NCBI GenBank assembly: GCA_965285935.1
Contig: OZ260664.1
Location: 40,858,001-40,922,000, forward strand
DNA: 64,000 nucleotides
Origin: Ophelia neglecta
Taxonomy: Eukaryota
Direction of reading: 5' to 3'
Shown here: piece after piece, positions 18,710 through 21,700 of the stretch
Layout of the letters: each line of letters begins with the position of its first letter
How positions within the stretch are numbered: the stretch's first letter is position 1
Made by a program: the position numbers and the translations under genes
Notes under the pieces: generated by a model
The model's input: only the letters and a program-made list of their open reading frames with translations
Told to the model about the DNA's origin: nothing
Databases searched by the model: none

Positions 18710-21700
18710 TCATAATAATATACAGCCCACTCTGTCTCTTGGTATAAGTCTAAGCTCAGATCCATGTTTAAGGAACACATTGCCTGAAAGTAAGAGGAAG
18801 AAACAATTGAAATCAGAAAACCAGTAAATGTTTAAGTCAGTAGTATGACACTATTTTTTGAGCAATTTTACCATCACATTACCATCACATTACCAACAAG
18901 TTGAAACTGTTAACATTATGTCTAGAATCACTCGATTCTCCCATATGGCTGCATTTCTGGCTTTGAAAATGACACAGATTCAGCCATTTGCATGCTGTTA
19001 ACTCTACCTAACATACTCCATGCCAACCACTCAATTTCTTTTCATTATTTTCTTTTATTAAAATAAAAAAACATCATCATGTATAAACCATCAAAACTGC
19101 TTTAAAGAATTGGGGACGGAAACAAAACATGCCCTTCCTCACCACTTTGTTGTAAAAATGGTCAGAAAAAATTCTTCTGTTTATAATAAACGGAAAATTA
19201 AGAGAATAAAGGACCTGCCTCACCATTTTGTGCATAATAGGATATGAGAACAGTCAGGATAATAAATCAAAAAGAATCATATCTCGCCATTTTCGAACAA
19301 TGCAAGCCGCCAACAATCAAAAAAAGGATAATAAACATGTCTGTCGCAAAATCACCCCCTGGAAAAGTCAAAGCAACAGTGGGTACCAGATGGCCCCCCG
19401 CCCCAAATTTTTTTTATTTGCTCAAAACCTTAGAAATTGCATGAAATAGCCAGAAAAAGCAAATATTAAAAAGCTCACAAATTTTGCCAAAAAATTATTT
19501 ATGCTTAACACACTGGAAATTGCAATTTTTATTTGGCATTGCTATGACAACTAATTATATTCAGATTGCTGGCAAATGTTATTCTGTTCATATAAAGCTA
19601 TAGTCAAAACAAATGGCTGGGTGCCTGGTGGACATGGCAAAAAAATGTGCCCAATTTGTTGCTGAAAAAGAAGGGCTTGATCTTTATTAACTTATACGGC
19701 ATTGTATTTATCTCGATTGGTAATATAAAATTGTCCTACCTGCACTTTGAGCAGGGTTAATTCCTATACCATCATTGGTTATAATTGCACTGGTAGCCGC
19801 AGGGACTTTGAACTGAAGAGAATAGAAAAAGTTAGATACACACATCGAATACAATAGAATATGTGCCGATTTAGTTTTATGTTTATACTGAATAATCTAT
19901 TTACTTTAACTGTTTAATCACTTAAAGAAAAAAAAAACTCAGCATATGAATAATTATTGCCCAATGTGCTACTGCAAGTATAGAAAATGCCTAGCAGATA
20001 CAAATTCCTACTAGGAGAAAGGTTAATGTAAACACAAGGTTAATGAGAATAAAAACTGAGTTTGAAATTAAATAGTTTCCCAGAACTCATTAGTGAAGCT
20101 GAATGCTATACTTGGTAGGAGTTTTCTTATAACAAAACCTTATACATCGATTTGGCAGGATTTACTCACGTTGGGTGGATATCCATACCCTATAGATGAG
20201 GTGTTATTTATACTGGTGTTTATCTCAACGGTCTCACCATGCAGCTCTCATCTAAACACTGGGTCTCACTAAGGCCTCTACGCGTACAGTTAATGTGACT
20301 CTTGAGATTACGTAAGGTTGATATCCCTAAGAGACGTTTATGTTTATATATACTGGCGAATTACATTGTGACTGATATATTAATTCCTGGTTCTTGGGTA
20401 TATACAGTTGTAAAGGCTGGTTATTCTCCTATTTGTACTTGTTTCATCTACAAAAGATCACCTGGTTCACATAGAAATTGTGGTGAAATTGGTGTTCTCT
20501 CACAGGGGGGCCATTCTTACATGCTGGCCAAAGCATTCAATATTGACAATTCAACAAGTCTGCCACTATGTTGCATGGCAGTCCGACCAAGCAGATAAAC
20601 AGCTCAGCATTGCAGGACAAGATTGAAAAGAAATATCAAACATAAACTTGTTCTCATACAACTTCACTCACAAGTATGTTTTCTTCAAAGCCTGTTGCAC
20701 TAAAAAATTCAGACTTGTACTGAAAATACACCTCAAGTAACAAAACCCACAAAAGATACCTCCTCAAACTCTCTATTGGTTATTAAAACTGTACCTCTTC
20801 TGCTGCAAATTTTAAAACAGCAGTGAATGGTGTCTGCTCCGGCACACTTAGTCTGCAAAACAAGAAAAAAAAATAGCTTAGTGGATGTCAAATAAACACT
20901 TTTGGTGTGCCTAGAATCTGTCAAATATATTGTTTAATTAAACCATTTGTTTTCTTCCTGTATTAATCAAATATGAAAAAATTATAGCCCATTTATACAG
21001 TCTGTAGGAGAGGGCTCTCTGCATGGAGATGTCAGTCTACCCAGAGAGTTTATCCAGGAGACACCATTGCCTAGAAGTTCAGTGAAATGAGTACCGCCGA
21101 TATTTAGTCCTTGAATTTTAGACATGCTTTTAAGATTGACCTTTTATGAGGATAATAACTTCATGCTTTTAAGGAATACTTAAATTATAAGTGCACATTT
21201 ATTCCTGAAGATAATGTGAATTCTAATTTTATAGCAGTTCGTTTCTCCGAATCTATTCCATTTGCAACCTATCCGGTGGAGAGCTCTTTGCGGAGACCAA
21301 GGGTCTATTCCATTTGGGAAATTTTGCTCTCCGCGGAGAGCTCTCCGCCTCTCCGCCGGAGAGGTTGCAAATGGAATAGGTTCGGAGAGCCTTCATTTAT
21401 CGCTCAGAAACTGTTTCAGGAACGAATCGATGGAAATTAGAATAAACACTATCTTCAGGAATAAATTTGCATTTCCTATTTTATATACTTCTTGACTAAT
21501 GACAGTAATTTTCCACATAAAATATCAATCTTAACATCATGTCTAAAATTCGAAGCTCAAATATCGGCGGTTATCATTTCACTAAATATCTGGATAATGG
21601 TGTCTTCTGGGTAAACTCTCCGCATAGACCCACCTGTCCAGACGGAGCGCCCGGACTGCTCCGGAGAGCTCTCCGCCTGTATTCTATTTACTGCGGACTG

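Follow-up and report, generated by a model that had tools for sequence, protein, structure and literature searches.

A UFM1 precursor of Ophelia neglecta with a tail that spells a CaaX box, probably by coincidence

Ophelia neglecta encodes a UFM1 precursor whose short C-terminal tail, Cys-Ile-Leu-Leu (CILL), reads as a CaaX box. Weighing the gene itself, the UFM1 tails of other organisms, the local base composition and the enzymes encoded in the genome, we consider it quite probable that the protein is an ordinary pro-UFM1 with a drifting, UFSP-removed tail that happens to spell such a box, and the balance of evidence on the box favours coincidence. The gene lies in a 64,000-nucleotide stretch of DNA (the window), for which an initial annotation had proposed that the tail could allow pro-UFM1 to be geranylgeranylated and held on membranes. 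The idea of a CaaX-tailed UFM1 is new and would rest on four residues in one species; the annotators had known of no description of it, and our literature search likewise gave no UFM1 with a CaaX tail and no link between UFM1 and prenylation.

In the reading that we prefer, a single-copy lophotrochozoan UFM1 gene would give rise to a precursor with a lineage-specific pro-peptide, CILL, past Gly83. Cytosolic and ER-bound UFSP proteases would cut after this glycine and the tail would be thrown away, while mature UFM1 would go on into the UBA5/UFC1/UFL1 cascade. The pro-peptide, being unconstrained, would drift, its length set by the first stop codon in the AT-rich 3' region, and any prenylation of the tail would be transient and unselected.

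The UFM1 gene of Ophelia neglecta

The gene occupies five exons on the minus strand between window positions 18710 and 22304 (Table 1), with GT-AG borders and fitting phases in all introns. As read directly from the sequence, the start codon is interrupted by intron 1, its first two bases standing at 22304-22303 and its G at 22218. Summing the residues of the individual exons gives a precursor of 87 amino acids, whose conjugating Gly, like that of human UFM1, is residue 83. A genome scan with the Pfam profile PF03671 (curated cut-off 27 bits) returned three matches in the window, 22161-22214, 20789-20854 and 19714-19818, which correspond to exons 2-4; exon 2 covers profile positions 1-18 (25.1 bits) and exon 3 positions 18-39 (26.8 bits, or 27.3 bits with its neighbours). 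The last exon spans 18783-18710, and in a phmmer search against PDB its peptide aligns with human UFM1 residues 64-84 (E = 2.5e-8). Between the profile and the PDB alignment, every coding exon of the gene matches UFM1, and across the 762-Mb assembly the PF03671 scan gave no UFM1 locus but this one. Exon-by-exon near-identity to solved UFM1 chains suggests that the protein adopts the beta-grasp fold. For annotation, the gene is a normal UFM1 orthologue. Coronin-like WD40 exons, with FQDDLFPDT as an example of their motifs, occupy plus-strand positions 9168-12875 and converge on the UFM1 3' end.

Table 1. Features of the UFM1 gene in the window, in the order of transcription
Feature	Positions	Strand	Content	Basis
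Exon 1 end	22303..22304	(-)	AT, start codon bases 1-2, then donor GTGAGT	Direct reading
Exon 2	22162..22218	(-)	G of ATG, 18 residues, Val bases 1-2	Borders AG / GTAAGT
Exon 3	20795..20852	(-)	(V) + 19 residues	Translation, borders
Exon 4	19740..19812	(-)	24 residues + Gly base 1	PF03671 match (42.7 bits), translation, borders
Exon 5, mature part	18725..18783	(-)	(G) + 19 residues through Gly83, GGC at 18727-18725	Alignment to human UFM1 64-83
Pro-peptide tail	18713..18724	(-)	TGT ATA TTA TTA, Cys-Ile-Leu-Leu, CaaX form with X = Leu	Direct reading
Stop codon	18710..18712	(-)	TGA	Direct reading
Candidate poly(A) signal	18446..18451	(-)	First AATAAA of the 3' UTR, about 260 nt past the stop	Consensus match

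The end of the last exon reads as it had been described, AGA GTG GGC TGT ATA TTA TTA TGA, that is R-V-G-C-I-L-L-stop; the strand, which the initial annotation had left unstated, is the minus strand, where these codons run from 18733 to 18710. The protein thus has the C-terminal ..IPRDRVG of the family, with Gly at the position of conjugation and cleavage, followed by a short pro-peptide. This Gly aligns with human Gly83 and the tail Cys stands where human UFM1 has Ser84, so that the whole pro-peptide is CILL, again as the initial annotation had it. Its Cys stands exactly four residues from the C-terminus, both a1 and a2 are aliphatic and X is Leu, which makes it a canonical CaaX box of the GGTase-I type; Cys-aliphatic-aliphatic-Leu is the consensus of that enzyme (PMC10511055).

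Could the expressed C-terminus differ from this reading, through an assembly error, a polymorphism or another mRNA 3' end? We regard this as hardly credible. Contigs of three DNA runs, which come from one sample and one study, cover 18400-19000 and agree base for base across the last exon. The tail also shares one exon with the essential ..IPRDRVG, and the sole GT there would delete Val-Gly, so no alternative splice swaps the tail alone. What speaks for a different end is that no RNA run among the public runs holds the UFM1 locus, the three holders being the DNA contigs of the one sample, and that the poly(A) site is a consensus match alone. Outside the coding sequence, the assembly and the same-sample contigs differ at three single bases in the UFM1 3' UTR (18436, 18454 and 18568), which are probably heterozygous sites.

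Diversity of UFM1 tails

C-termini of UFM1 were gathered from two exon-level word searches (queried with the open frames of exon 4 and of the last exon), a search with full-length mollusc UFM1 (120 of 1,715 UFM1 clusters listed), the members of clusters, and a scan of metagenome contigs run with an alignment as query. The matches listed comprised 370 UFM1 proteins with 200 distinct tails, ranging from 0 to 46 residues in length, in agreement with the earlier statement that these tails vary between species. The metagenome contigs added 47 distinct tails, read at 80 UFM1 loci.

None of the approximately 245 other distinct tails, among the matches listed and the 80 metagenome loci, consists of C-a-a-X followed by a stop. 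Among the matches listed, Cys occupies position -4 in only two of the 200 distinct tails (..CPRA and ..CHRQ), neither of them aliphatic, and the matches listed from the word searches and the mollusc search contained no CILL-tailed protein. As the sole CaaX box among about 245 distinct tails, CILL is rare, which counts against coincidence; so does its quality, for judged by its residues it is no marginal match and fits the GGTase-I consensus strongly. We also considered whether CaaX boxes are avoided in UFM1 tails, and rejected this, since fewer than 0.3 would be expected in about 245 tails and a count of zero is therefore uninformative.

The tails are constant within a genus, as with HQ in Haliotis, HCNHG[NY]RC in Mytilus and SHT in oysters, and those of different families are unrelated. 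Stability within genera together with unrelatedness between families is the pattern of drift in an unconstrained peptide. Cys accounts for 5.4% of residues in the 200 distinct tails and for 7.6% when only tails up to four residues long are counted. It directly follows the Gly in 11 of the 200, plus many metagenome tails, and the unrelated lineages with this arrangement end in C, CL, CF, CV, CW, CM, CR, CS or CC. One metagenome UFM1 (L010, from position 1543 onward) has the tail CFLLTRRM, where a stop four codons earlier would leave a CaaX box. It was rejected as a CaaX box, its CFLL start running on into TRRM, and it illustrates how near drifting tails come to such motifs.

Nearest available sequences

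Five contigs (L004-L008) share the exons alone with the window, at 70-80% nucleotide identity, and their introns and flanks do not align. The closest of them, a long ENA contig (L006), has the same exon layout, 80% exon identity and a tail of Gly-Cys-Cys-stop, and a Logan contig (L008) ends in Gly-His-stop. Identity to the window at third codon positions is 51% for L006, 41% for L008 and 27% for L007; given these values of 51% or less and the unaligned introns and flanks, the compared contigs are distant relatives. The tail of Capitella is SL and that of Paralvinella DWHT. The CaaX box was accordingly not found to be conserved among the orthologues compared, all of which are distant (third-position identity at or below 51%).

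Among the matches listed from the exon word searches and the mollusc UFM1 search, no open reading frame had intron-level similarity to the window. When an exon of the neighbouring gene (27561-27839, minus strand) served as query in a full HMMER search, no syntenic contig of a close relative was found, the best match being 67% identical. At E <= 0.001 the same exon finds 435 representative relatives; the top ones are about 60-67% identical to it and include proteins of 750-1400 residues. The family is widespread, and the exons of the gene reach to about 33900. Another contig, P0144, was set aside as a relative because it is plant-like.

Base composition and chance expectation

Base composition around the tail favours Ile and Leu, and the tail codons ATA TTA TTA continue into an AT-rich 3' UTR (TGA ATA ATA ATT ATT). 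We estimated the chance of such a tail with a crude neutral model that takes the local base composition and asks for Cys, then two aliphatic residues, then Leu, Phe, Ile or Met, then a stop. Given a Cys after the Gly, this model yields a strict GGTase-I box with stop in 0.18% of cases and a loose CaaX box in 1%; when the Cys is not presupposed, the figures are 6e-5 (0.006%) for the strict and 3e-4 for the loose form. Over about 1,700 UFM1 clusters, the same crude model predicts roughly 0.1-0.5 chance CaaX tails. With that many clusters on record, a single chance CaaX tail is unremarkable, and the caution attached to the initial proposal, that a four-residue match in AT-rich sequence can be chance, appears plausible from the 0.18% estimate and the roughly 1,700 clusters. 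An origin of the tail in a tandem repeat was considered and dropped: TRF found nothing at 18550-18800, and the tail is AT-rich and not a microsatellite.

Prenylation and UFSP machinery

The genome holds Peptidase_C78 matches (PF07910, UFSP-type) at three loci, C9:38271028, C7:12407678-12410210 and C7:61150502-61153177. This is one locus above the usual UFSP1 and UFSP2, and one of the matches contains a TAA. On the side of lipid attachment, GGTase-I beta is encoded, an exon on contig C8 matching GGTase-I beta chains at E = 5e-25 as against E = 1e-5 for FTase beta and RabGGT beta. The gene is apparently duplicated in tandem, with about 6 kb between the copies (C8:77756600-77759100 and 77762200-77767300), both putative copies giving Prenyltrans matches at identical profile positions. 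FTase beta and RabGGT beta are each encoded at a separate locus, and ICMT (PF04140, 61 bits) is encoded as well. Prenylation and UFSP enzymes are expected in any animal genome, so that their presence permits the prenylation hypothesis and does not support it.

Both UFSP1 and UFSP2 mature pro-UFM1 and also cut fusions of pro-UFM1 with GFP (PMC9638016; PMC10952357), and leaving groups as bulky as GFP and RPL26 are tolerated by UFSPs (PMC9638016). Since these proteases cleave whatever comes after the Gly, even GFP, the UFM1 tail is free to drift. We infer that pro-UFM1 of Ophelia is cleaved by UFSP and that its tail has no selected prenylation function.

A part of the newly made pro-UFM1 might nevertheless be modified by GGTase-I before UFSP acts, the modification being tolerated as a by-product and having no role under selection. 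We consider this unlikely, and give a similarly low probability to the step that would follow, in which UFSP2 at the ER strips off the lipidated tail. In favour of such incidental prenylation are the strong GGTase-I consensus of CILL, the encoded GGTase-I beta, FTase beta, RabGGT beta and ICMT, and the large leaving groups that UFSPs accept. All contigs from the one individual sequenced moreover carry an identical tail, which indicates that it is at least tolerated. Against it, cytosolic UFSP1 processes pro-UFM1 efficiently, which leaves little time for prenylation. The position of the Cys is also unfavourable: a stretch of only some six residues presumably separates Cys84 from the last beta-strand of the folded beta-grasp core, and the flexible linker of typical CaaX substrates is longer. 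In complexes with UBA5 or UFSP, the RDRVG tail of UFM1 adopts an extended form.

A bolder proposal is that prenylation of pro-UFM1 is functional, anchoring at the ER competing with or directing UFSP cleavage and thereby coupling isoprenoid supply to free UFM1. We judge this very improbable. There is equally little chance that geranylgeranylation of Cys84 before cleavage would hold the precursor on the ER, where UFSP2-ODR4 would free UFM1 beside the UFL1 ligase and ribosomes, and an alternative outcome, a membrane-anchored ubiquitin-fold protein of the UBL3/MUB kind, has just as slim a prospect. The proposal has some attraction given that UFMylation operates at the ER and that UFSP2-ODR4 is ER-anchored (PMC9638016; PMC10952357), and that UBL3/MUB offers the precedent of a ubiquitin-fold protein using a CaaX anchor (PMC10511055). 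The strength of the motif, the encoded enzymes and the lack of any description for UFM1 in the literature searched count on the same side. The comparative evidence points the other way: no other UFM1 tail surveyed has a CaaX box, the nearest available sequences, distant as they are, end in CC, H, SL and DWHT, and the tail resembles translated AT-rich UTR, so that the support for a function is confined to the four motif residues.

Comparison with known systems

The protein belongs to the same family as human UFM1 and resembles it in its length to Gly83 and in its ..IPRDRVG end, the last-exon peptide being identical at 19 of 20 residues. It differs in the tail, which is Ser-Cys in human pro-UFM1 and CILL in Ophelia. 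Features of UFM1 in general are also found, namely an exon structure conserved with L006, a single-copy gene and the presence of UFSP genes.

UBL3/MUB, whose CaaX box is CVIL or CTIL, is alike in having a ubiquitin fold that ends in a box of the GGTase-I type. It is, however, not homologous to Ophelia UFM1 at the family level, and the resemblance is functional only. Its box is conserved across eukaryotes, follows a longer linker and has no protease-cleaved Gly before it, whereas the Ophelia box lies within a normally discarded pro-peptide and is not conserved among the distant orthologues compared.

The deubiquitinase MINDY-1/FAM63A has an identical C-terminal CILL, and the box of the mouse protein was captured by alkyne-isoprenoid labelling and is predicted to be geranylgeranylated (bioRxiv 10.1101/2024.03.03.583211), a result that also favours incidental prenylation of the Ophelia tail. 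MINDY-1 is an unrelated protein with a long tail that terminates in the box, and the likeness shows only that CILL can act as a CaaX box.

A further parallel is provided by ATG8/LC3, SUMO and NEDD8, in which a dedicated protease takes off the pro-peptide past the conjugating Gly and tails drift between lineages, although these are other families with other proteases.

Significance for UFM1 biology

As found, the tail of Ophelia UFM1 mainly documents the free evolution of UFM1 pro-peptides, with about 245 distinct tails and Cys frequent directly after the Gly. The precursor with its CILL tail is at the same time a natural construct for studying competition between a prenyltransferase and UFSP at one junction. 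If the tail were used, it would represent a new control of a ubiquitin-like modifier, in which the inactive precursor is lipid-anchored where the pathway acts. Ophelia pro-UFM1 would then be, ATG8 aside, the first case of a conjugatable ubiquitin-like protein with a lipidated precursor, and UFMylation would be tied to the mevalonate pathway in a lineage-specific manner.
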